Of a stretch of DNA of 64,000 nucleotides, positions 9,519 through 62,594 are shown piece by piece. Both the position numbers and the translations under genes were made by a program. Location of the stretch: assembly GCF_030144855.1 (NCBI RefSeq), contig NC_082725.1, positions 39,494,001-39,558,000 of the forward strand, given 5' to 3'. How positions within the stretch are numbered: position 1 is the first letter of the stretch; every line of letters begins with the position of its first letter. Source of the DNA: Hypanus sabinus (taxonomy: Eukaryota). Below the pieces are notes generated by a model. It was not told the DNA's origin and searched no databases. It was given only the letters and a program-made list of their open reading frames with translations.

Positions 9519-9614
9519 CATTGTAGGTCACCCTCGGTTTGGTCAGGCACAGGACAAGGTGCAAGTCCATTTCTTCAGTGGAAACAAACTTTGAGCACAC
9601 AGGACATTTGAAAC
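9519..9614 (-). CDS. ZNRF2: Internal coding exon (probably exon 2) of E3 ubiquitin ligase ZNRF2, UBZ-type zinc finger
   Basis: Reverse complement reads ...ctctttttaaaccag|GT TTC AAA TGT CCT GTG TGC...ACC TAC AAT G|gtaagt. The exon is 96 nt, phase 1/1, and translates to (G)FKCPVCSKFVSTEEMDLHLVLCLTKPRVTYN. This matches the recalled ZNRF2 peptide (FKCPVCSKFVSSDEMDLHLVMCLTKPRITYN) better than ZNRF1. No other exon of the gene was found in the window. Confidence 0.93.
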
Positions 9615-21660: not shown

Positions 21661-24544
21661 GAGTCCAGAGGTCTATGATGGATTGCTAGGCAAATGGATT
21701 GGGTCACAAGCAAAGATCAAAGTAATGGAGCAGGGTTTGAGAACTAAATGCTGTGGAGCCACTATACTTAGAGATTCTCTCATGTTGACAGGAAGCAACA
21801 TAGAACAACTCGATGGAAGCTTCTCCATTCTTTAAACGGGTATTCACAGCACACAAGATGACATCTCAGCCAATATACCAGTTCAATTCATGCCAGTTGC
21901 CTATTCCTTCTCTGGTGGATTATACACCAAACTGTGCCAAAGGCTACAGAGAGGTTGGAGAGTGTTAATAAACAATGGCCATAGGCGCACAGAGAAGGTT
22001 TGATACACAAAGTGATGTAATTGGAAAAGAGAAGTGGACTTAGCGCTCAGAGTAGTCAGCGAATAAATATAATGAAGAGAAAAGAAGTTGAAGTCTGGGC
22101 TATAGCTAATGCAGAGGAATGAGACAGAAAGATGAGTGAGTGAGTGAGTTCTTGTTAGGTTTGGGGGGTGGAAGTGTCAGGCAACTGGCTGTACAAAATA
22201 ATTTGGGGGTTTCAGTTTCAGTTGCCTATCCTGTAAGTGGACCACCAAACTTTGAATTCAGAAGCTTGGCCTTACTGCTCAAAAATGTGTTATGGGTTAG
22301 GTTTTTATTCTAGACTAATAAATATTTCAGAAAGGCAAGGATATTTCTTAGACCATAAATCAGACAGGCATTGGGAGATTGATTTTTCTTTACAGTAAAT
22401 TTCAATCTATTCCATATCACTATGCAATAGAAAATAGTTCCTGGTAATCTTACTTCAGCAGACAACCATCTCCAAAGCTATCCTGCCTTAACAATCCGTA
22501 ACATTCAGATTCCAAGTTCTTCCAGTGCCTTGTCCTTCAACCAGTAGCTTATTTCTGAGAGTGGCATGGTTCTGCATCTGGGGTTAGTCAGTGAAATTGG
22601 CAATTAAAATTCTACCACATATCTGAAACCTCCATCCCCCAGGGCTTATATTGCTTTCAGTGGGAAGCATCATTTTTTTCTCTGGAATCTGGTTAAACAC
22701 CACTCCCTATCTTAAGCTAATCATTTTTGTTAACAATGTCAATGAGATCTGGCTATTAGATCAATTACACATTGCCTGCCTGACAAAGACCAGAAAATCT
22801 GTGGATGCTGGAAATCCAAAGCAACACACACAAAATGCTGAAGGAACTCAGCTGGCCATGCAGCACCTTTGGAAAAGAGAAAACTATCCACATTTCGGGA
22901 TGAGATACCCCGTCAAGATGTGTCAGGTCCTTTTGTGTTAAACTTAACCCCAAAGCAAAAACAAAATCAACCCAATGTTTGGTAGAGGCTACAAGACAGA
23001 GAATCTGATACTGTGCTGTGGTCCTAGGTGACATAATCACCAAAAAGGTGTGGTGGGGAAGGAGTACAATAGTTAAGTGATGGTCCACATATTGATGAGA
23101 AATTAATCCATGAGACACTCACAATGGAGATATCTGGGTGAAGGAAAATACAACCTGGTGGGCCAATTAACAAAAAATAATGAATAGTAATTATTGAAGG
23201 GGGAATAATTTGGCCAGCCAAAATAAAATGTGTTCAGCTATCTCTCTCAATAGAATTACTTAAGTTCAACCAAATAGTTTCCTGCCAATTGCAAGCTGTG
23301 AACACTACTCATTGGACATTGAGTAAGGTCAATTCTATAAAGCAATTAAGAAGTACCAATGGTATGCACAGAACAGTTTGTATTTACTACCAATTAAAAC
23401 AACTCACACTAAAAACCCCAAGGTTCTTTCGAGGGCAGGGGAGAATATATGAACAAACAAAGAAGATAAAGACATCAATCTTGATTATAGGTAAAGCAAT
23501 CAAGGTTATTGAACCTATTTATTTTTCCATAAATAAAAAGAAAGAAAAAAGTGATAAAGAAAAATAGTGTTCTATGTCTGAGCAAATTAAGAAAACAAGG
23601 ATGGAAACACCAGAGATGGAAATTTGAAGAGTTGGCAGCCATATACAAATACACTGGAGTAAGTGTTAGATGTTGGGCCAAAACATGGAGCAGATGCAAG
23701 GCAATTATAAGCTTGTTATTTCATGGTGGAATTTGAGTACAACACAGATCAGTGTCCAGAAGGAGATCAAGGCTGGATGAGGTCAGATTTGGCATAAAGC
23801 AGGGCAGTTTCCTTTCTGTGGACTAATTGGAATTTATGCACCTTGCAAGATAAGGGGCAAAGATAAGCAAAATCGTGGATGCAGCAATTAATGTAGTAGA
23901 CCAGGCTTCAAAATGATGTTTAAGCTTGAGTGGAACAGTTTTTATGTAATGCTTTGATTTATCAGAACCTTTATTTCCAGCTGTTTATATCATACAGCAT
24001 TCATCCTTTCATTTTATCTCCCAATGAAGCCACATTGATGTACTCTTTCCTGAAACACTTCCCTTTTTAGTGAATATTTTTCTATCCTTAATGTTGCACA
24101 CTAGTGTTTTGCCCATTTTGTCCTATTTGTTACAACACAGATGGGTGCCTCAGACATAGTTTTAACCTTAACAATTGCCTTCTACAAATAGTCCAATCAA
24201 CACTTGCAGAACAGCCAGTCATTTCACTAAATTCAGTCCTACCACATAGCAAAGATCAATACATCAATATGTACTGTGAATTTCAACTCATGCCAAATCC
24301 CAGTCACCACCCATTCCAACATATTCCTATTTGCACTGCCTTTTGTCAATGATTAACTTTAAGATTCACAGACTTCTATAATCCCCCTATGATCATCTCT
24401 CTCATTTCTGTAACTTTCATCTCTAAAACCCACCAAGATCTTTGTAATCCTTCAATTTTAGCTCTTGCACATCTTCCAAATTTCATTCCATCAATGTCAT
24501 TTGTCCCCCGTGATTGCATGGCTTAAACTATAGAACCTTTTAAT

Positions 24545-25074
24545 TCCCTTTCTGATATGCCTATCCATGGCCTCCTCTACTGTCAAGATGAAGCCACACT
24601 CAGGTTGGAGGAACAACACCTTATATTCTGTCTGGGTAGCCTCCAACCTGATGGCATGAACATTGATTTCTCTAACTTCTGTTAAGGCCCCTCCTCCCCT
24701 TCTTACCCCATCCCTTATTTATTCCCCCCCCCCTTTTTTCCTCTCTCTGCCCCTCTCACAGTCTTTGCCTGTTCTCCATTTCCCTCTGGTGCTCCTGTCC
24801 CCCCTTTCTTTCTCCCTAGGCCTCCTGTCCCATGATCCTTTCCCTTCTCCAGCTCTGTATCCCTTTTGTCAATCACCTTTCCAGCTCTTAGCTTCATCCC
24901 ACCCCCTCCGGTCTTCTCTTATCATTTTGGTTTTCCCCCTCCCACTTTCAAATCTCTTACTATCTTTTCTTTCAGTTAGTCCTAACGAAGGGTCTCAGCC
25001 TGAAACGTCAACTGTGCTTCTTCCTATAGATGCTGCCTGGCCTGCTGCATTCCACCAGCAATTTGTGTTTGTTG
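24545..25074 (+). mobile_element. Penelope-like element 3' end (endonuclease C-terminus, UTR, mutated hammerhead)
   Basis: Translates to HGLLYCQDEATLRLEEQHLIFCLGSLQPDGMNIDFSNFC*. A pyrimidine tract follows, then cctaacgaagggtctcagcctgaaacgtc. Confidence 0.88.
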
Positions 25075-25600: not shown

Positions 25601-26727
25601 TTAGATATTTTCATTTAGTAGTTAATAGCCCAAGATAGGAAATAGGAAGAAATAAATCCAAAATAAAATAAATCGCTATTGATTTAAACAGCCCGTTATT
25701 TAATAAAGTTGAGTGATTCTTTTTTAATCACACCAGTCTCATGATGAAATAAAACCTTATGTGCTGAATTTAAAAATTCTCCTACTGACAATATTCTTTC
25801 TAAAGGATTAAGAACTGATTCCTTTCATTGGCATGTTCAATACAATCAAGGTGCTTTTCTTGGGCTAAAAGTGAAGCTGCAAGCTAGCTTGGTGTGGGGA
25901 GAATGTTAAATCTAAAGACCTTGAACTAAAGGCTAAAAAGCAAAACAAAATTCCTCAGAGTTGTACCTTTAATATATGTTACTTTGCAATGCTTATCTAA
26001 CTCAGCAGAGGTCCAAGTAAGTAAACACAAAGATCTAAACCAGATGCCTTGGCAAGATGTTCCAAGAACATTGTTCTTGGAGAAGTAATCCTTGCACTGC
26101 AGCTCTCCTCATTTTACATTAATATTTGTTGTCATGCTACTTGCATCAAATTAGAATTATACAATATCCACAAAACTTATCAACTTGTAAATACTTGTTG
26201 CCCTGTCAATAGGGAACGTTTGCCCAAATCTGCACCCTTTTTTCATCCCAACTGTAATCCTCCTGATGAAAAAGAGGTTTAGGAGAGCACACAAGGCTCC
26301 TCACCTGGCCTGAACAGTACTCTAAATCTCTCAATCTAAACATTTCACTTTTTAGAAGCATGTGAGATGGCCTGGATGAAGGGTCATGACCTGAAATGTC
26401 CATCGTCCATTTTCCTCTATAGATGCTGCCTGACCCACCAAGTTCCTCCAGCATCTCATGTGCTGCTGCAGATTCCAGCAAGTACAGCCTCGGTCTGTGA
26501 TCAGAAGAGAGATAGTTGATGGTGGATGACCTACTGAACAGTCAGGGAGGGTGCTTGGAGATCATGGTCTGAGAATGGATAACAAGGCTCTGAGAATTTT
26601 GGATGGGAAGGCAATGTTGTAAGTATTTATCTTTTGTTTCCCCATTTTGACGGCTCATGTTTCTCTAGTGCTGGCAGCAACTACCTCAAGACAAACAATC
26701 CATTTACTAACAGTCAAATACGAGTAA

Positions 26728-29040
26728 AAGTTGGATCTTGCTTATACAAACATCCCCGATGCTTACCGGACAGATCCCCACCCCCACCTCGGTTACTCAG
26801 ACCACACCTCTGTTATGCTAATCCCAGCATACAGACCGCCCGTCAGGCGCTCCAGACCAGTTCAGAAGCAGGTGAAAACCTGGCCAGCAGGAGCCATCTC
26901 TGCTCTTCAAGACTGCTTTGAGCACACTGACTGGCACACGTTCAGGGAGGCTGCAACCGATGGCGACTCTACCAACTTAGAGGAGTACACAGCATCAGTG
27001 ACCAGCTACATCAGCAAGTGCATTGATGATGTTACTCTGTCCAAGACCATCACTATACGTGCCAACCAGAAGCCATGGATGACCGCAGAGGTGCGTGCGC
27101 TGCTGAGGTCCCGCGACTCCGCCTTCAGAGCAGGCGACAAGGCAGCTCTAACAACAGCAAGGGCCAAACTGTCCCGAGCCATCAGAGGGGCAAAGCGTGC
27201 ACATGCCCAGCTAATCCACAGCCACTTCCAGGACAGTGGCGACACGCGGCGCATGTGGAAGGGCATCCAGGGCAACATCACCTGACTGTGCGGGTGATGC
27301 CTCCCTCCCAGATGTGCTGAATAACTTCTACACCTGGTTTAAGGTGAAAATGACATGGCGGTGAGGAAGTCCACCCCTGCTACAAATGACCATGTGCTGT
27401 GTCTCACCGTGACTGACATGAGAAGAACCCTGTGCAGGGTCAACCCACGGAAGGCTGCTGGACCAGACAACATCCTTGGTAAAGTGCTCAGAGGATGTGC
27501 AGACCAGCTAGCAGATGTTCTCACTGACGTCTTCAACATCTCCCTGAGCAACGCCACCGTTCCAACAAGATTCAAGGCCACCACCATCGTCCCCGTGCCA
27601 AAAAAGTCTTCAGTGTCCCACCTCAATGACAACCATCCCATTGCACTCACATCCATCATCATGAAGTGTTTTGAGAGGCTTGTCATGAGGCATATCAAGA
27701 CCCTGCTGCCCCCCCCTCACTGGAACACCTGCAGTTAGTGTAGCGTCCCAACCGTTCAACAGATGACGCCATTGCCACCACCCTCCACCTGGCCCTAACC
27801 CACCTGGACAAAAAGACACATACGTTCGGATGCTGTTCATAGACCTCAGTTCAGCATTCAACACAATCATCACTCAGAAACTGATTGGAAAGCTGAGCCT
27901 ACTGGGCCTGAACACCTCCCCCTGCAACTGGATCCTAGACTTCCTGACTGGGAGACCTCAGTCAGTCCGGATTGGGAGCAGCATCTCCAACACCATCACA
28001 CTGAGCACAGGGGGCCCCCCAGGGTTGAGTGCTCAGTCCAGTGCTGTTCACTCTGCTGACCCACGTCTGTGCTGCAACACACAGCTCGAACCATATCATC
28101 AAGTTCGCCGATGACACGACCGTGGTGGGTCTCATCTGCAAGAACGACGAGTCAGCTTACAGAGAGGAGGTGCAGCGGCTAACGGACTGGTGCAGAGCCA
28201 ACAATCTGTCTCTTAATGTGAACAAAACAAAAGAGATGGTTGTTGACTTCAGGAGGGCATGGAGCGACCACTCCCCGCTGAACATCGACGGCTCCTCGGT
28301 AGAGATCATAGAGAGCTCCAAATTTCTTGGTGTTCACCTGATGGAGAATCTCACCTGGTCCCTCAACACCAGCTCCATAGCAAAGAAAGCCCAATAGCGT
28401 CTACACTTTCTGCGAAGGCTGAGGAAAGTCCATCTCCCACCCACCTCCCCATCCTCATCACATTCTACAGGCATTGTATTGAGAGCATCCTGAGCAGCTG
28501 CATCACTGCCTGGTTCAGAAATTGCACCATCTCGGATTGCAAGACCCTGCAGCGGATAGTGAGGTCAGCTGAGAAGATCATCGGGGTCTCTCTTCTCTCC
28601 ATCACGGACATTTACACTACACACTGCATCCGCAAAGGAAACAGCATTATGAAGGATCCCATGCACCCCTCATACAATCTCTTCTCCCTCCTGCCGCCTG
28701 GAAAAAAGGCTCTGAAACATTCGGGCTCTTACGACCAGACTATGTAACAGTTTCTTCCTCCAAGCTATCAGACTCCTCAATAACCAGAGCCTGGACTGAC
28801 ACCTTGCCCTACTGTCCTGTTTATTATTTATTGTAATGCCCGCACCTTGCGCAGTCCAGTGTAGGTCTGTAGTCTAGTGTAGCTTTCTCTGTGTTGTAGT
28901 TTTTTTTTACGTAGTTCAGTCTAGTTTTTGTACTGCTTTATGTAACACCATGGTCCTGAAAAATGTCTCAATTTTACTATGTACTGTACCAGCAGTAATT
29001 GTCAAAATGACAATAAAAGTGACTTGACTTGACTTGACTT
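26728..29040 (+). mobile_element. Rex1/Babar LINE, 5'-truncated and frameshifted
   Basis: Motifs [40 protein letters not shown] and [20 protein letters not shown] followed by a (GACTT)n tail. Confidence 0.92.
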
Positions 29041-44831: not shown

Positions 44832-47333
44832 CTACAAATACATTTTTAAAAACTTGAGGCTGGCACACCCAATCAAGTAGTAAAATAATCTGCTTCTTTT
44901 CCAAGTGGGTGAATGAAGATGGATGGCGGGTCTGTTGGAATGTGAGGAAGGTACAACAGATAGTTAATGATTGGAGATGAGACACCACATGATGGAATTC
45001 ATCCAATCAGAGCTGGCAACAACCATATGCCTCTCTATATCTTTCATACTCCATCGCAAGTGGCCTTTTAAGGAAAATGACCAGGAAAGAAAGGGGGGGA
45101 GGGAGGGGTAGGGGGAGGAGGAGGAGGAGGAGGGAAACCTACTCTTATATCTTAGACCTTAGCTGGTTCAGCAGCTATGTGAGGAGTTATTGGTATGAAT
45201 GCTGTAGAAAGCCAAGTTTCTCAAAGGGTCCTCCCCATTGTATCTTAAGTCTTTAGAAGGGAGAGTCAATGGGATAATGAAGTGCAATTATAACAATATT
45301 TCCATATTGGTTTATTATTGTCACATATACTGAGATAGCGGGAAATCTCAATTTTGCATACCATCCATGCAGCTTATTTCAAAATGCAAGTACTTTGAGG
45401 CATCATTTGGGAAAAGTAATGAAAATAGAACTAATAGAAAATAGAGTTCCAGTTACTTTTATAGAGAACATGTCGTGCGGTCAGGCAATAAGGTGGAAAG
45501 GCTATGATGAGGTAGATAGTGAGGTCAAGGGTCCATCTTTAACATACAAAAGATGCAAGAGTCTTATAACAACAGGGCAGACGCCGTCCTTGGGCCCAGC
45601 AGTGTGCGTTATCAAGCTTCTGCCTGGTGGAAGTGGGGAGAAGAGAAAAGGTTCAGGGTGGGAGAGGTCTTCCATTAAGCTGGCTGCTTTTCCGAGGCAG
45701 AAAGTAGACCCAGTATCCACTCACAAGAACAGAGTTGCAAAGGAGAATAAAGACAGGAGAAAACAATTTGAAAGTATTGGGAATCATTTTCAAACTGTTT
45801 GCAATGTAGGAGCAATAGTGTTAAACACTATTTAATGACTGCTTAAACTGAGTTTCTGGCACAAGTGGTTGAGTGCACAGCAACCTGTGAATACTTGGTT
45901 TTCTCTTTTGTCTGGCTCTCAGCCTGCACCAAAACGCCAGCCACAGACCTGCGGCCTTCCCCGGGATACAAAAGCCAATGACCACGACTGGATGGAAAAC
46001 AAGTTGGATGTGGAGGAGATTAATATGGATATGACAGAGCCAACTGGCTAACAGCTGGGATCAGGATTAGAATTTAAAAAGCACAGGAATGTGAAATGCT
46101 TAAGAAGCATTTTCCTGAAAACAAAAAAAAGAAAGCATGTTACTAATCAGTCTCCAATCAGCTCCACATAACAATTACTCACAGATATTAGATGGGAAGT
46201 GAACTTCAGGAGAGGCATATCGTTAGAAAAAATTACATAATTTATCTAGTTGTTGCACTCATCAGGAGCACCAAAGAGATCAAGTGAAATATTCAGCCTT
46301 CCATCAAAAACGCAGCTAGCAACTGCTCGTGAATATCTTCTATTAACTGTCAGTGCGGCACCCATGACAAAAGGTCAAGATCAGTCCCAGTGATTACTCA
46401 ATAACGCTGGGCCAAGCAGCCCTAGCAGGTTAACCATGTTAATCCTCCAGATTTGGAATCAGTTCTCAGCTCGGGAATATTGACAAAGCCTATGTGGAAC
46501 AAAAAGTGTCAGTATATATTTGTACAAGGGGTGGCTGTGTCCAGCAGCGCTCCTGATTGCTTGATATTGCACTGCCGAGTGCCATTCATTATAGCACTCT
46601 TGGCCGTGGTTTTCTGTACACTCACGGCTATAAACCCACTGTGCCTTAAAAAGACATTATGTGGTTCTGTACTGCTGTGCTGGAACCCTGCCACAAATCT
46701 GTGTCCTCTACTGCAACCCTACAGGAGCGAAGTTGTTTTGTCATTTCAGTAGTGAAAGCGATCTCATCACCCAGGGCTGAGGGCGGAGTGAGCACCGGGG
46801 TATCTTGCAGGGGCTGCCTGCGAGGGCCAGCTCGATGCCGTAGCTCGGCAGCGAAGGGCCAGGGTCTGCGGCAGGCTCCCAGCACAGTGCAACCCCGCCT
46901 GCGATGGAAGGTGCTGCCACCCTGTTCACGATGCATATTCACTTTCCAGGGTCAGGAAGCATTTTTGCTAAATTCAGCTTTTTTTCCCCCAGATTTATTT
47001 ATCACACGTACATCAAAATTTAGTGAAATGCACTGTTTGCATCAACAACCAGCTCACCCAAGGCAGCCTGCACATTTTTTTAAGCAAAGCAGAAGACGTT
47101 GTTCAAGATTCAAGATGTTTGTTGTCATTTTTTTTTAACTCGTGTTGCTAACCATCCTCTTGAGAAGCATCGCTAGGCAGGCCCAGAAAGTGACCCAACT
47201 GAGACTGAAAATTTATCAAAAGGCACAACATTGCTTGTGAACCTAAGGGTCACGCCATCTGATCTGATCAATGCTGTTGTAAAAATATCACATGCATTTG
47301 AGGTTATCACTAGGTGAATGGTTAAAAAAAATA

Positions 47334-48007
47334 CACACTGTGGCCGCTTTATCAGCAAACACGAGGAAATCTGCAGATGCTGGAAATTCAAACAACACAC
47401 ACAGAATGCTGGTGGAACGCAGCAGGCCAGGCAGCATCCATAAGGAGAAGCGCTGTCGACGTTTCGGGCCGAGACCCTTCGTCAGGACTAACTGAAAGGA
47501 AAGATAGTAAGAGATTTGAAAGTAGGTACACCTCCTCGTTAATGCAAATACCTAATCAACCAACCATGTGGCAGCAATTCAATGAATAAAAGAGCGCAGA
47601 CGTGGTCAAGTTGTTGTTCAGACCAAACATCAGGATGGGGAAGAAATGTGATCTAAGTGGTTTTGACTGTGGAATGATTGTTGGTGCCAGACTGAGTGGA
47701 TTGAGTATCTCAGAAACTGCTAATCTCCTGGGATTCTCACGCACAACAGTTTTCAAGAGTTTATAGAGAATGGTGCAAGAAACAAAGAACAACAACAAGC
47801 GGCAGTTCTGTGGATGAAAGTGCCTTGCTAATGAGAATTGTAGGGCGAGGTTACTGTTATCTCCCTTTCAGCTTCAACTAGTCAGGACAATGGCCAGACT
47901 AGTTCAAGGTGACAGGAAGGTGACAGTAGCTCAAATAACCATGCATTACAACAGTGGTGAGTGCAGAAAAGCATCCAAGGTATACCTAATAAAGTGCCCA
48001 CTGAGTG
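47334..48007 (+). mobile_element. Tc1-like non-autonomous element whose left TIR is split by a Penelope fragment (47356-47523)
   Basis: TA-cacactgtggccgcttta|..|taggtacacc ... tacctaataaagtgcccactgagtg-TA. Transposase N-terminus MGKKCDLSGFDCGMIVGARLSGLSISETANLLGFSRTTV. Confidence 0.88.
47455..47488 (-). ncRNA. Minimal type-I hammerhead ribozyme motif, intact core
   Basis: Minus strand reads GTC CTGACGA A GGGT CTCG GCCC GAAA C GTC GAC: stem I GTC/GAC, core CUGAnGA...GAAA, stem II, palindromic ACGT in place of stem III, and a GUC cleavage triplet. Confidence 0.8.
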
Positions 48008-52669: not shown

Positions 52670-55600
52670 CAGTAGATTCCGGTTAATTGGGCGCATCGGG
52701 ACCAGTACATCTTGGCTCAATTAACTGAGATTTCATGTAAGTAGTTCAAGTATAAAAAGAGCCAAACTATTGTTAACTAAATAATAAATTATATATTAAA
52801 ATAGAAAAAGAACAAATTAGAACACTACCAATACTAGTACAAACAAGCTGGATGAACTCAGCAGATCAGGCAGCATCCGTTGAAATGAACAGTCAACGTT
52901 TCGGGCCGAGACCCTTCGTCAGGAATAATAGTGGTTGTTTGTTATATTCAATGATGACAGAAAACCTGTGCAGGAGAGTTTTTGAAGTGGAAAAGCTGTT
53001 GCATTAAGGTAGTTCCACTCTTCAAGTTCCAGTCGTTCAAGTAGATATCACAACTGGGGTCTGTTGTGTATTTAATATTTCAGTGATATTTGAGTAATCT
53101 TGTAAATATATTGTTTGGTTAAGCATTCTTTGTTGTTTATATAATTCATTATGGTTATATGTAAAAATACATGAACTGTATGCGTCATGATGCAACCACA
53201 TGATATGTGTGCACCTCGCTTAAAGAACAAACTAATACTTGCATCTCTCTGCTCTCGTTTCCCTTTGAATTAGTTTAGCGTTTTAAAGTTACTAAACATA
53301 ACAGTGGTGGCAGGGCATTTTTAACCAGAGACTGTTACTGGCCTGTTGAAGTCCAGGGAGACATTCGAGTTAAAAACAAGTGCAGCGAGGAATGACAAGT
53401 GAAAAAAAAATCAGCTCAGCACATGCAGAAACAGTCGAGTTAATAAAAAGGCTTTAAATAAAAGAATTCATGAGTTCATAAACAGTGAGTGTCAAGTGAT
53501 AATAATCAAATAAAAACAGCAGAAAAGGCTGGCTACATTGGAAAGATTGATGTGTTTGATTACACAATGGGTAACTGACTCATGTATACAGAGATAATTG
53601 AACAGTATTTTTAAGCAAATGGAGTAGCCAATGAGAAACAAATTTTGCTGAGTGCATCAGGTTTAAAGGCATATAGTTTGCATAGAAGTTTAACTGCTCC
53701 AACTAAACCAGTCAAAATGAACTATGATGATATTGTGAAAGTAATGCTGGAACATTTAGAACTGAAACCATTGTGGATTACAAAATGTTTTAGGTTTCAT
53801 AAGTGGAATCAAAAGCAAGTGGAGTCCATTTTAACATATATGGCTGAATTAAAGAGATTGTCTGAGCATCGTCAGTTCAGTAATAGGCTTAATAATGTAC
53901 TGAGAGCTCATTTAGTTTGGGGAATCTTACAAGAATGCATTCAAAAATGGCTCCTAACTGAAGCACAACTTATATTTAAAAGAGCAGTTGAAATAGCTGT
54001 ATTAATGGAAGCTGCAGATAGAGGTGCACTTGCATTGCAGAAAGGAATGAAAGTGAGTGTGAACAAAATTGCAATATTTAAACAGAAACTAGCCTGGCTG
54101 AACAAACTTTATTACCATTGTGGTAGAGGCTCACATTCACCAGTCCAATGTAGATTTCAAGGTGAAACTTGCAGAAAATGCAATAAAGTAGACACATACA
54201 AAGAGTATAATGGGCAGACAAAAATAAATAGCATGCACAGGGAAAAGAAAAAGTTTAAAAAAAGTCAAACTGCATTTTCAAAAGGAGCACTAATCTACAT
54301 GGTGTTATGAAAAATCTGATAATGTTGTAAGTGACACAGGACTGTGTAGCCTTAAGATTAATAATGTGAAAACTAACAATATAGCTGATGCCAGAAATGA
54401 ATGGCAAATTAATTAAAATGGAATTAAACAATGGCTCAATCAAGAGAAAATCTGCAGATGCTGGAAATCCAAGCAACACACACAAAATGCTGAAGGAACT
54501 GAGCAGGCCTGAGAGCATCAATGGAAAAGAGTACAATCAACATTTCATGTGGAGAGGAGGAGAAAGGTGTCCAGAGCTGTCAACCACTTCCTGCAGTCTC
54601 AGAATCAACTCTGACAACCACCAAAGAGACCCAAGGACCTGAAATTGTTTTCACAGCTGCAAGTCGCACCTGCCAAGTAGATTGATCCCCCTTGTCAGGA
54701 AAGGCCTCATCTTACAAGAGTAAGAAAGCTTCCACTCTGATTAAATCATAAGAACTGAATGGAACAATTTAAAAATTGACAATGCTGTGGCTGTCTATGT
54801 TGAAGTGCATTAGATAGTATACTGTGTATATGGTTGAGATGCATTCTTTATTGAGTTGGAGCTTATAGCTAAATAGGGAGGAGTGTTGTATATTTTATAT
54901 TTGGATAACATTGTAAATATATTGTTTGATTAAACATTCCTTTTTGTTTCTATAATTCATTACGGTAATGTATAAAAATGTGTATTGCATATGCAATTAT
55001 GCTCCCATGTGATATGTGCACACTTTGCTTAAAGCAAAGAACAAACTAAGACTTGCATCTCTTGGCTCTCTTGTTTTCCTTTGAATTAGTTTAATGTTTT
55101 GAATAGCAGGGTCTCCTCCCTGGTTGCAGTAGATGACCATGACTACTTCTGTGTCTCGTCATGCCCTTCGCTCTCTGTTGCAGAACCACCTTCCTGGGCA
55201 TTGGATCTCACGGTCTGGTCTTTGCATGATTGGACATGCACGTCCCTATCTCACCAGCATATCAGACCCACCCCTACCCTTGTCTCATTTAGCCCACCTG
55301 TTGAAGTAGTGTACTAGGACATGGCTGCTGTCACAAGCAAACATCTACTTGGATTCACCGGTTGCACCTGAGTGATCTCAAGGTGGTTGTTGATAACTTC
55401 AAATTCTTTGTAGCTCCTAAATTGTTGAAGTAGTGAAATCATTTCATTTTCACTCCTGGCTGTTTCTGGCATTTCCAAGCCTGAATGCTTGAAACCACGG
55501 TGACCGAAACAGTTCCTAGTTGCCTAACTGCTTTATTTCCTCCCAACAATGGCAGACAAAAATCATTGCCTTTTGAACACAAGCACACGCAATAGCCACT

Positions 55601-58920: not shown

Positions 58921-59554
58921 CGTTCCATAGTATGGTGATGCAGCTCTGTTGGTGAACCTGTAAACTAGAGGCTCGGGATAATTAGTCTAGGGTGAGGGTT
59001 AAAATGCGATAAAGGCAGTTTTTACAATGGGACTTTAGTTGAAATAAATGAGCAGATTAAATAATGCAAACCTCTCTTTCTCATAGCATCCAGGAATTAG
59101 AAATACGTAGCTTGCAGTCTCGCTATCAACACTCACATCACAAGAACAAACTTTTTTTTAAAGTAAATTCAGTAACTTCCAATGAGAATCAATATAAATT
59201 AGAAATACTTCACCACAGAAAGCATTTGTGCATTTTTATACCAAAGTACCATGTACGTGCAAATACTTATGAACAAGCCTGTATAATGGAATCTATAATG
59301 ACAGGTGACAAACATGTGACTTAATATGTTTGCTCCAACACACCAGATGTGAAAGAGAAGCATCTCTCAAGTGAGCAAATTCATCCAACATCACTTCTTT
59401 TTGGAAATTCTTGCTTGTTGCTGGGAGACACAAAAATACAGATTATTTAACTGAATCCATTACATTCTTGAATTTTTTAAAAAAACAATGGATTGTCAAT
59501 GCTTGGCCATTCATGACATTCCATCTGCCAAAAGCTGAATTTCCCAGTGAACAG

Positions 59555-60215
59555 CCGTTCTCATTTCTATCCCCATTCTTGTAATGACATGTCAGCCCAT
59601 GGCCTCCTTTTTTGCCATGATGAGGCCATTCTCAGGGTAGAGGAGCATCACTTCACATTCTGTCCATGTAGCCTCCAACCCTGATGGCAAGAACATAGAT
59701 TTCTCCTTTTTCTCCCTCCCTCTTCTTCTATTCCCCACTCTAACCTCTTCTCCTCAACTGCCTGTCACCTTCCCCGGTTGCCCATTCTTTTTCCCTTTCT
59801 CCCACGGTCCGCTCTCCTCCCCTGTCAGATTCATTCTTCTCCAGCCCTTTACCTTTCCCTTCCATTTGGCTTGATTGATCACCTTCTAGCTATCCTCCTT
59901 TCCCTTCCCCCACCTTTTTTTTATTCTGGTGTCTTCCCCCTTCCATTCCAGTCCCGAAGAAGGGTCTCAGCCCAAAACATCCATTATTCATTCATTTCCA
60001 CAGATGCTGTCTGACCCTGCTGAATTCCTCTCGCATTTTGTGTGTGCTGCTCTGGATCAAATGAAACTGATGTTTTAGGAATAACAATCGCCATCTTGAA
60101 AGATCATGAACTTGAAACAGCAAATCTTTTTCTCTCTCTACAGATGTTGCGTGGCTTGCTGATTACAACACTCCCTGGTCCTTTTTATTAGATACTCAGC
60201 ATTTGCAGTATTTTG
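59555..60215 (+). mobile_element. Penelope 3' end (59555-60057) followed by a second, older terminal fragment (60095-60215)
   Basis: HGLLFCHDEAILRVEEHHFTFC remnant, pyrimidine UTR and decayed hammerhead cagtcccgaagaagggtctcagcccaaaacatc. Confidence 0.8.
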
Positions 60216-61960
60216 CTTTAGTGTTGTTTAAGTATTATCTGGTGCTCAAACACTGTTTGTGTCAAAGACAGTGATGTATCTCTTGTATTACAATAGACTG
60301 CCCAGTGTAATTGACTGTTATTTTCCTTATGTTAAATGAAAAACACCTTTTCAAAAAAAACAATACCCTGCATTATCTAAACAGTTGAAATTGCAAGTTG
60401 AACTTCTGTAATGAAGTCCCTATGCATGATCCATTTGTGATCATCGGCATTTGCTGCCGTTGGATGCTCTCAAATCAATAACCAGCTTCGACTTGCAGGT
60501 CAATATTCAGACTTCAGCTGCATAACGCCATAGCCAGTTTCTCTTAGTCCCTTAAGTACTTTGATGGATTCCATCTGGTCCCGATTGTGTAATACGAAAG
60601 CAAATATTTGATGTTTATATGGTACAAGACTTTTAAGTTGCATCCGATTTATCCCTTTCCTCATCTCCTGCATCAGTTTTTGCTGGCGACACAAGAAACA
60701 GTAGGTGCTGGAGTGCAGAACAAAAAAAATATTAACTTCTGGAGAAACTCAGTGGGTCAAGCAGCAAATGTGGGTTAATGTTTCAGGCCAAGTCCAACAT
60801 CATGACTGAGAGTGTAGAGGGAAGTCTTGCCAGAGTGTGGATCCTGAGGATCAGATATTCAAGTGATCTGTCTTCCAGCAAGAAAATTTGACTATCCAGC
60901 CAAGCATGTTGCAACTTCACGAGTTGGCCAAATTCTCCCTCAACTGCCGTTCTGCCAGGACATCACAGCTCGATTGCGATTAGGATGAATTGTTCTTCAC
61001 ACTCCAGAAATACACCCCTCACTGTCCAACCCACACTCTTTAGACCAATATTTGTAATGCACTTGGTTCTGTCTGCTTCTAACGCGAATATATTCAGAGC
61101 ATCTGGACAGAGAGATCAGGGTACCTCATTTTATATAGCCTTTTGCTGTTATCACATTTCAATGCTCTGGGAGAATTTAAACAGTTATACCCCAGTTCAT
61201 CCTAAGTTGTATTGCAGTCAATGAATTTGGAGTGGTCTCTGAGGGAGTGGAGAATGGATGAATGATCTTTTGCTATTAGTGTTCAAGTCAGAACCCATCA
61301 ATTATTCAAAAAAATACAGCACTAACTCCATACATACACAAAGTTGGTTGCCATTACAGATTTTAGGAACATTTGACAGCTGTGGTTTGACTCTGAATCA
61401 TCAACTGCAGCCATGAAATTAGCTGCCAAACAAACTTTCCTGCCTTAATTGCTTCAGAACTATAGGGCTTAAAAGTTGCCTGCAGGACGGCAACTGTAGA
61501 AACTGCTCATACATTTCAGAATGGTGGAACTACAGGTTCCACTCGTTATCAACACAAACAGTCCAGCAGCAGACTTCCGCGCTCTGCCTCTCACCACCAG
61601 TCACAGCCAGCTACATGTTATGTTGAGAAATAAGCAGCAAGGGCAAAAACAACACAATTCTTGCAACCAGCTTGGCTTTGTCCTGTACCTGCATACAATT
61701 CCAAAAGCACTCAAATAAAAGGTTCTCTTTAAAGTATGCTGGGTGCTCTCCCCACTTCAGAGAAAAGATAGAACTTGCATATATACAATATAACACCCAT
61801 CAAAATTGCAAGATGTATTATTGACTATACCTGTGAGTGTATCGTTGCAATGTACGCCAATGTTCAGCCATAAAGTTCAAAACAACAATAACATAAATGA
61901 CACAAATAATTTATGTGTGGGCATCACTGGCAGAGGCTTCGCAGTAGTGAATTTAAAGAG

Positions 61961-62286
61961 CAAACACAAGGAAATCTGCAGGTGCTGGAAATTGAAGCAA
62001 CACACACAAAATGCTGGTGGAACACAGCAGGCCAGGCAGCATCTATAAGGAGAAGTACTGTCGACGCTTCGGGCCGAGACCCTTCGTCAGGACTAACCGA
62101 AAGGAAAAATAGTAAGAGATTTGACAGTAGTGGGGGGAGGGGGAAATGCAAAATGATAGGAGAAGACCGGAGTGGGCGGGAATCGGTTAGTCCTGACGAA
62201 GGGTCTCGGCCCGAAACGTCGACAGCGCTTCTCCCTATAGATGCTGCCTGGCCTGCTGTGTTCCACCAGCATTTTGTGTGTTGTTG
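61961..62286. mobile_element. Young inverted pair of Penelope terminal repeats
   Basis: 61998-62100 is the near-perfect reverse complement of 62183-62286. Confidence 0.9.
62190..62223 (+). ncRNA. Minimal type-I hammerhead ribozyme motif, intact core
   Basis: gtc CTGACGA a gggtctcggccc GAAA c GTC gac; predicted cleavage after 62220. Confidence 0.8.
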
Positions 62287-62594
62287 TTCAAATAATTTAT
62301 GTAGTAGTTCTGGTTAAGAATTATCCTAAATCTCAAGGAAAACTCTTTTCAATAACAGCTTTTCCTCCATTTATTCAACTTCCAAGATCTGAGCATCATT
62401 GGCAATGCCAGCATATATTCTTCATCCCTAGTTGGCCTTGAAGTTGTGATGGTGAGCTGCTATTTTGGGCCACTGCATCCTTTTGGTAAAGGTATTTCCA
62501 CCAGGTTGCTGGACAGCAAGTTCCAAAGTCGTAAAAATCAAGGACTCAACATGCATTCCAATTCAAGATGGTGTGTAACGTAGAAAGAAACTAG

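Follow-up and report, generated by a model that had tools for sequence, protein, structure and literature searches.

Minimal hammerhead ribozymes (min-HHRs) in the ends of Penelope-like elements have been known since 2014. These elements are defined by the combination of a reverse transcriptase (RT) and a GIY-YIG domain (PMC4209133, PMC11167929), and an unpaired nucleotide is a hallmark of their hammerheads (PMC4209133). A single min-HHR showed no cleavage, and dimers and trimers showed low cleavage, mostly at non-physiological Mg2+ (Cervera & de la Pena 2014, PMC4209133). A review states that Penelope hammerheads need dimers and act at very low rates (PMC6765202). The hammerhead of the Poseidon element of Anolis cleaves only when the element protein is added (Frangieh et al. 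2024, PMC11167929). In that system cleavage is dispensable for insertion in vitro, and no RNA-seq reads start or end at the hammerhead site (PMC11167929).

Hammerheads of this ancestry also occur as vertebrate non-LTR retrozymes, which derive from Penelope terminal repeats and include one from a cartilaginous fish (bioRxiv 10.64898/2026.07.22.740005). About 44% of related hammerhead-bearing copies in Xenopus are intronic, their depletion being only modest (bioRxiv 10.64898/2026.07.22.740005). The ultraconserved HH9 and HH10 hammerheads of amniotes, found in introns of RECK and C10orf118 (cited in PMC10761166), are single-copy and orthologously conserved, with a closed helix III and loop-loop contacts, active as monomers and detected by Rfam. 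Here we describe a minimal hammerhead motif carried in sense orientation in an intron of a ray ZNRF2 gene and compare it with these systems.

Layout of the motif and its place in ZNRF2

The window, by which we mean the whole 64-kb stretch analysed (C39:39494001-39558000), contains a minimal type-I hammerhead motif at 47455..47488 on the minus strand, referred to below as the 47k motif. Read directly from 47488 to 47455, the minus strand is GTC-CTGACGA-A-GGGTCTCGGCCC-GAAA-C-GTC-GAC, with all hammerhead core nucleotides intact. The motif opens with the 5' strand of helix I, GUC (47488-47486), followed by the core box C3-U4-G5-A6-C7-G8-A9 (CUGACGA, 47485-47479), an extra unpaired, bulged A (47478) and the helix II hairpin GGGUCUCGGCCC (47477-47466). 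In this hairpin GGGU pairs with GCCC around a CUCG tetraloop, giving three G-C pairs and one U.G pair, with G10.1-C11.1 among them. G12-A13-A14-A15.1 (GAAA, 47465-47462), C15.2 (47461) and G16.2-U16.1-C17 (47460-47458) come next, and the 3' strand of helix I, GAC (47457-47455), pairs with GUC at 47488-47486. The conserved catalytic set (C3 U4 G5 A6 N7 G8 A9, G12 A13 A14, A15.1-U16.1 and H17) is thus complete between 47485 and 47458 on the minus strand. The scissile bond is predicted to lie between 47458 and 47457. The preliminary description of this DNA had given the same string and placed the cut at the same bond; the string matches our reading exactly, and the bond agrees with the position of C17 in it.

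Helix I of the 47k motif is only 3 bp long (GUC/GAC), and A15.1-C15.2-G16.2-U16.1 are contiguous, forming the palindrome ACGU with a loop of zero length. As no loop separates A15.1 from U16.1, helix III is impossible in cis and could form only between two copies. Two strands can be drawn as a nested double hammerhead in which helix III has 4 bp and the helices I, each of 3 bp, are intermolecular. The 47k motif therefore lacks the canonical layout of three helices in one molecule, helix III not being closed, and has what distinguishes min-HHRs: the core boxes, the absence of helix III and loop 3 and a palindromic 15.2-16.2 segment. Its CUGACGA-A-GGG...CCC stretch conforms to the min-HHR features given in PMC4209133, as does the earlier assignment to a minimal hammerhead without helix III that carries an ACGT palindrome. 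The motif is a member of the min-HHR class and not a canonical, monomer-competent hammerhead.

Compared with the min-HHRs of metazoan Penelope-like elements (PMC4209133), the 47k motif shares the CUGANGA and GAAA boxes, the lack of helix III and loop 3, a position in the terminal region of an RT/GIY-YIG element and a genomic distribution of thousands of copies, mostly solitary and truncated, with some close inverted pairs. It differs in having a helix II of 4 bp plus a tetraloop, whereas that of the Schistosoma families is 7-8 bp, and in having a helix I of only 3 bp. The ray family is also nearly uniform in our sample, with one helix II, while the families described there are highly variable, and its host is a cartilaginous fish, a group absent from the sampling of that paper. 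In PAc, the Poseidon element of Anolis, the motif and the beginning of the reading frame overlap, and cleavage has been shown to require the element protein (PMC11167929); here the motif lies ~300 nt past the stop codon, in a 3' fragment. With HH9 and HH10 the 47k motif has in common a type-I core in sense orientation within an intron of a protein-coding gene, but it belongs to a multicopy repeat, lacks helix III and has no Rfam match. The vertebrate non-LTR retrozymes are likewise hammerhead-bearing and related to Penelope terminal repeats (bioRxiv 10.64898/2026.07.22.740005); they are tandem units yielding circular RNAs, in contrast to the single 5'-truncated tail of an autonomous element found here.

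The host gene was identified through its exons. A 96-nt zinc-finger exon at 9519..9614 on the minus strand (FKCPVCSKFVSTEEMDLHLVLCLTKPRVTYN), bounded by an AG acceptor and a GT donor, has 68% identity to the ZNRF1 zinc finger (PDB 5ywr_B) and 84-94% identity to source-named ZNRF2 proteins of Lissotriton, Labeo and Anarhichas. When the genome was searched with the Lissotriton ZNRF2 protein, the ZNRF2 matches, this exon included, all fell on the minus strand of contig C39. Exon 1, encoding residues 1-164 in one open frame, lies at C39:39607574-39607978, ~98 kb upstream on this strand, and residues 194-237 and 225-249 match C39:39442916-39443047 and C39:39439472-39439546, respectively. From these positions, 9615-64000 of the window falls inside the ~104-kb intron 1, with the hammerhead in sense orientation. 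This homology identifies the host as a ZNRF2 orthologue with transcription from the minus strand; the zinc-finger exon and exon 1 bear out the gene, strand and sense intronic placement first proposed. A paralogous ZNRF-type gene, probably ZNRF1, occupies C36:22458789-22558277 on the plus strand, with zinc-finger and RING exons over ~100 kb.

The Penelope-like element tail and its copies

A 1.1-kb query around the site was compared with the genome, and 29 other loci were oriented and compared mutually, making 30 copies in all. Similarity of the 29 loci to the query (95-98% identity) is confined to the interval from 47525/6 to 47354/5, which delimits a 173-bp unit at 47354..47526 on the minus strand, the 5'-truncated, 3'-terminal fragment of a Penelope-like retroelement. 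Its 3' end (...GTGTTTGC) lies at ~47355 and its truncation point at ~47526, within 1-3 nt of the span of 47356-47523 reported before. All 30 copies have a common 3' end (...GATTTCCTCGTGTTTGC, ~47355 in the window), and their 5' ends fall at varied positions from -1 to past -1199, counted from the start of the 47k copy. A shared 3' end with variable 5' truncation indicates a retroelement copied from its 3' end and, together with the many dispersed copies, is what a Penelope-like insertion presents.

The longer copies supply the identity of the element. Five of the 30 extend at least 1.1 kb upstream and run uninterrupted into an RT/GIY-YIG frame. In one of these longer copies (L009/L031) the hammerhead strand is open for 390-470 residues, and the frame combines a reverse-transcriptase-like C-terminal half with a GIY-YIG-like block (LYIGET...R..EH). 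The frame stops ~260 bp before the 173-bp unit. In this decayed copy the Pfam GIY-YIG match is sub-threshold, scoring 17 bits (E 0.007-0.009) where the curated cut-off is 22.6. A protein search with the element frame returned 520 relatives, with E down to 1e-220 for the best, which come from rays and sharks; the best-scoring belong to Hypanus sabinus, Mobula hypostoma, Rhincodon typus and Chiloscyllium punctatum. Many further relatives in other animals (E ~1e-130 to 1e-143) carry PF00078 (reverse transcriptase) and PF01541 (GIY-YIG). The tail is contiguous with the frame in the longer copies, and the hammerhead thus sits in the terminal region of an RT plus GIY-YIG element, as min-HHRs do. The 47k copy is the last 173 bases of a dead Penelope-like element; the common 3' end, the variable 5' ends and the frame of the longer copies confirm it as the Penelope terminal fragment that it had been called.

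The motif belongs to a very abundant repeat family. In the 64-kb window the general descriptor CTGANGA-N6-30-GAAAC finds 3 sites where shuffles predict 1.33, which is not significant, and all three are one identical 25-mer, at 47461-47485 (-), 52898-52922 (-) and 62193-62217 (+). Across the 4.04-Gb genome the exact 34-mer occurs 3,336 times (1,690 forward, 1,646 reverse) and its reversed control 0 times, which marks it as a member of such a family and not a chance match. The 27-nt core, allowing up to 2 mismatches, has 48,944 genomic copies, or ~1 per 83 kb, again with 0 in the reversed control. Sampled 31-mers of the 173-bp tail are shared to 47-87% with public runs bearing 13 organism labels, an observation that points to near-identical copies of the element in many related species.

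Eleven fragments of the element tail lie in the window, between 8951 and 62726, where ~0.8 core-bearing copies would be expected at the genome-wide density; the excess may reflect a local insertion preference or merely uneven repeat density. Eight are in gene-sense and three in antisense orientation, giving no sign that sense copies have been purged. An older, diverged gene-sense copy at 52847..52928 on the minus strand (81% identity; the 52.9k copy) has an identical core, a GUU cleavage triplet and a 2-bp helix I. This copy lies 5.4 kb nearer the 5' end of the transcript, and no other candidate partner within this intron retains an intact core. A possible reading of the 47k and 52.9k copies as paired terminal repeats of a single full-length element was rejected, because the homology of the 47k copy ends at 47526, no element frame lies between the two and they belong to diverged subfamilies. 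Further along, an inverted, fold-back pair of tails consists of a gene-sense arm at 61959..62130 (-), 92% identical to the 47k copy and carrying GAAGC (A15.1 to G), and an antisense arm at 62183..62288 (+), in which the exact 34-mer is intact and which lacks about the last 35 nt before the usual 3' end.

Other repeat material surrounds these tails. Four fragments of the element reading frame occur in the window, at 39359-38916 (-), 24539-24679 (+), 10395-10213 (-) and 59529-59712 (+). A G+C-rich stretch at 26700-28750 (+), with a GC content of 0.50, is neither an exon nor a CpG island and holds a run of open frames that, with translations judged by eye, resemble a LINE-type reverse transcriptase.

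A second block, downstream of the hammerhead at 47395-47445 (-), reads GGATGCTGCCTGG..CTGCTG.GTTC..CCAGCAT; across diverged subfamilies its conservation is comparable to that of the ribozyme core. Its counterparts in other copies are parts of 52847-52900 and 62225-62275, and it holds a short inverted repeat, ATGCTG/CAGCAT. This block may be a part of the element RNA that is recognised for internal initiation of reverse transcription.

Decay of the copies and competence for cleavage

The 47k copy is young, as first described. It averages 95.4% identity to the 29 best copies, differs privately from at least 80% of them at 2 of 173 positions and keeps all 8 of its CpG dinucleotides, the maximum of the set (median 6). 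CpG positions make up 9% of sites in the copy set and account for 25% of differences, 55 of 58 of which are transitions. Catalytic positions are hit as readily as others, as in CTGACAA (G8 to A), GAAATG and GAAACA (15.2/16.2) and GTCAAC. Within the window the hammerhead segment is intact in the 47k copy and, on the plus strand, in the 62.2k copy. The 62.1k copy has one core change (GAAGC, A15.1 to G) and the 52.9k copy an altered cleavage triplet (GUU), and the segments at 24.9k, 38.6k, 22.9k, 62.7k, 26.4k and 9.0k are heavily mutated. Judged by these patterns, decay after insertion is neutral, core positions included, and the 47k motif owes its intact state solely to a comparatively recent insertion.

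The 27-nt core of the 52.9k copy is identical to that of the 47k copy, with flanks diverged to ~81% or less, which suggests constraint in active lineages and not covariation. One helix II sequence is present in ~165 kb of sequence, where element-borne motifs differ by decay mutations only; the sole pair-preserving change in helix II in this sample is U.G to U-A through CpG decay. With a single helix II variant present, compensatory covariation of the helices was absent from the ~165 kb.

Hammerhead models, which the preliminary description had put forward as a check, do not recognise the motif. With the five hammerhead models of Rfam 15 (Hammerhead_1/3/II/HH9/HH10), there was no match at the gathering score in the 64-kb window, nor at E<=10 with permissive filters in 2 kb. 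This outcome is expected of a motif without helix III, and it counts against canonical membership, not against membership of the min-HHR class.

Predicted folding energies are also unfavourable. In a 61-nt context the monomer has a minimum free energy of -14.1 kcal/mol, against -7.8 for the hammerhead-compatible fold with helices I and II. For dimers, we modelled a double hammerhead in which helices I and III are intermolecular and each molecule cuts the other. Two 47k copies in this nested form reach -14.5 kcal/mol; as two free monomers they score -28.2, and their best dimer -34.5, which puts the active fold about 14-20 kcal/mol behind its competitors. For the heterodimer of the 52.9k and 47k copies the corresponding values are -12.4, -24.8 and -31.7 kcal/mol, and the 47k core acting on the 52.9k site would have a 5-bp helix I and a 4-bp helix III. 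By nearest-neighbour energies, which omit hammerhead tertiary contacts and were calculated with no known dimeric hammerhead as a positive control, competing folds exceed the active double hammerhead in stability by about 12-20 kcal/mol. These modelled energies weigh against activity of the 47k motif, short of excluding it. In the 173-nt element RNA, helix II is absent from both the minimum-free-energy and the centroid folds, and stability does not exceed that of shuffles (z = -0.73).

Public runs matching a 5.9-kb stretch or the 173-bp unit were all assembled contigs, which do not reveal RNA ends, and none was recorded as RNA. Four of these runs were compared with 46900-48000. Only a large, DNA-like run covers the unique flanks at 47085-47343, which three possible RNA runs leave uncovered; the repeat portion has very high multi-copy contig depth, and no position was reported at which molecules start or stop. 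Loose contig ends at 47455 occur in the DNA-like run too, and they therefore reflect subfamily divergence just past the motif and not cleavage. A 363-nt contig of run X1 (organism A) matches 47024-47376, spanning the unique 3' flank and 22 nt of the element; the alignment (~95-97% identical) contains 8 substitutions and 10 gap letters. This contig hinted at an insertion shared with a related species or present on a divergent haplotype, a reading that we set aside because the 22-nt bridge is too short.

Competing explanations and wider meaning

We hold with high confidence that the 47k copy is a dead, 5'-truncated, 173-base Penelope-like insertion and that its hammerhead is a passenger, most likely without consequential cleavage of ZNRF2 pre-mRNA. 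The last 173 bases of an element inserted in sense orientation into the ~104-kb intron 1 of ZNRF2, bringing with them the element's own minimal hammerhead without helix III, a type that active lineages seem to keep. Its presumed role in such lineages is the processing of tandem element transcripts, where, from the published evidence, it would work as a double hammerhead with help from the element protein. In a solitary intronic copy the motif would be a passenger, decaying neutrally like thousands of its siblings, and it is most likely inactive in vivo. The preliminary description stands as to sequence, element, age, gene and strand. Its further proposal, that the motif could cleave its own pre-mRNA and so affect co-transcriptional processing, does not find support: the active fold is disfavoured, decay is neutral, sense copies are not avoided, identical copies number in the thousands, and in the literature monomers are inactive and dimers weak (PMC4209133), with cleavage dependent on element protein and no RNA ends at the site in vivo in the Anolis case (PMC11167929).

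It is nonetheless worth considering that the motif could be weakly active in nascent ZNRF2 pre-mRNA, cleaving intron 1 at low frequency and leaving output little changed or unchanged, although we regard this as unlikely. The route would be ACGU pairing with the 52.9k sense copy or with other transcripts, possibly aided by a Penelope-element protein or chaperones. The 47k core has all its catalytic nucleotides, and the identical core 5.4 kb upstream on the same strand makes a trans double hammerhead formally possible, with the 5-bp helix I and 4-bp helix III of the heterodimer at one of its two active sites; low dimer activity (PMC4209133) and protein-assisted cleavage (PMC11167929) are both on record for the class. 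The other half-site, however, would have a helix I of only 2-3 bp, the 52.9k partner carries a GUU triplet, and the deficit of about 12-20 kcal/mol in stability, the lack of RNA-seq ends at the Anolis site (PMC11167929) and the neutral decay all argue against even this modest activity. It is tempting to go further and imagine that a trans double hammerhead of the 47k and 52.9k copies, or activation by the element protein, cuts intron 1 co-transcriptionally whenever the family is expressed. We give this very little credence; if true, ZNRF2 output would be coupled to transposon activity, as would that of hundreds of genes with intact sense copies.

Two other origins for the motif fare no better. 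The 173-bp unit might be a short, non-autonomous, hammerhead-bearing retroposon, either retrozyme-like or a SINE-like derivative of Penelope terminal repeats. Such vertebrate retrozymes have been described, one from a cartilaginous fish included (bioRxiv 10.64898/2026.07.22.740005), and many sampled copies end within ~340-560 bp upstream; but no single start is shared by the 30 copies, whose 5' ends range from -1 to past -1199, five copies run into the RT/GIY-YIG frame as 5' truncation of an autonomous element predicts, and the ZNRF2 locus holds no tandem array, which together make this origin very improbable. Co-option of the motif as a conserved regulatory ribozyme of ZNRF2, in the manner of the intronic hammerheads of amniote RECK and C10orf118, is suggested by position alone, in sense orientation within a long first intron, and we judge it extremely improbable. 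The motif is one of 3,336 identical copies, its copy differs from its siblings by only about 1-2%, the stable helix III and loop contacts of co-opted intronic hammerheads are absent, the Rfam models HH9, HH10 and Hammerhead_1 give no match, and neighbouring sense copies in the same intron have decayed. Overall, the chance that the 47k motif has a consequential regulatory role appears very slight.

We therefore return to the passenger reading, under which the 47k motif is an ordinary repeat feature, probably without effect on ZNRF2. In itself the finding is of little import, being a well-described repeat feature with thousands of copies in the genome. Its wider value lies in the material that the family offers on whether minimal hammerheads cleave in vivo and on the possible cost of intact sense copies within introns. 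With at least 3,336 identical copies, this genome provides good statistical power for a comparison of orientation and intactness.
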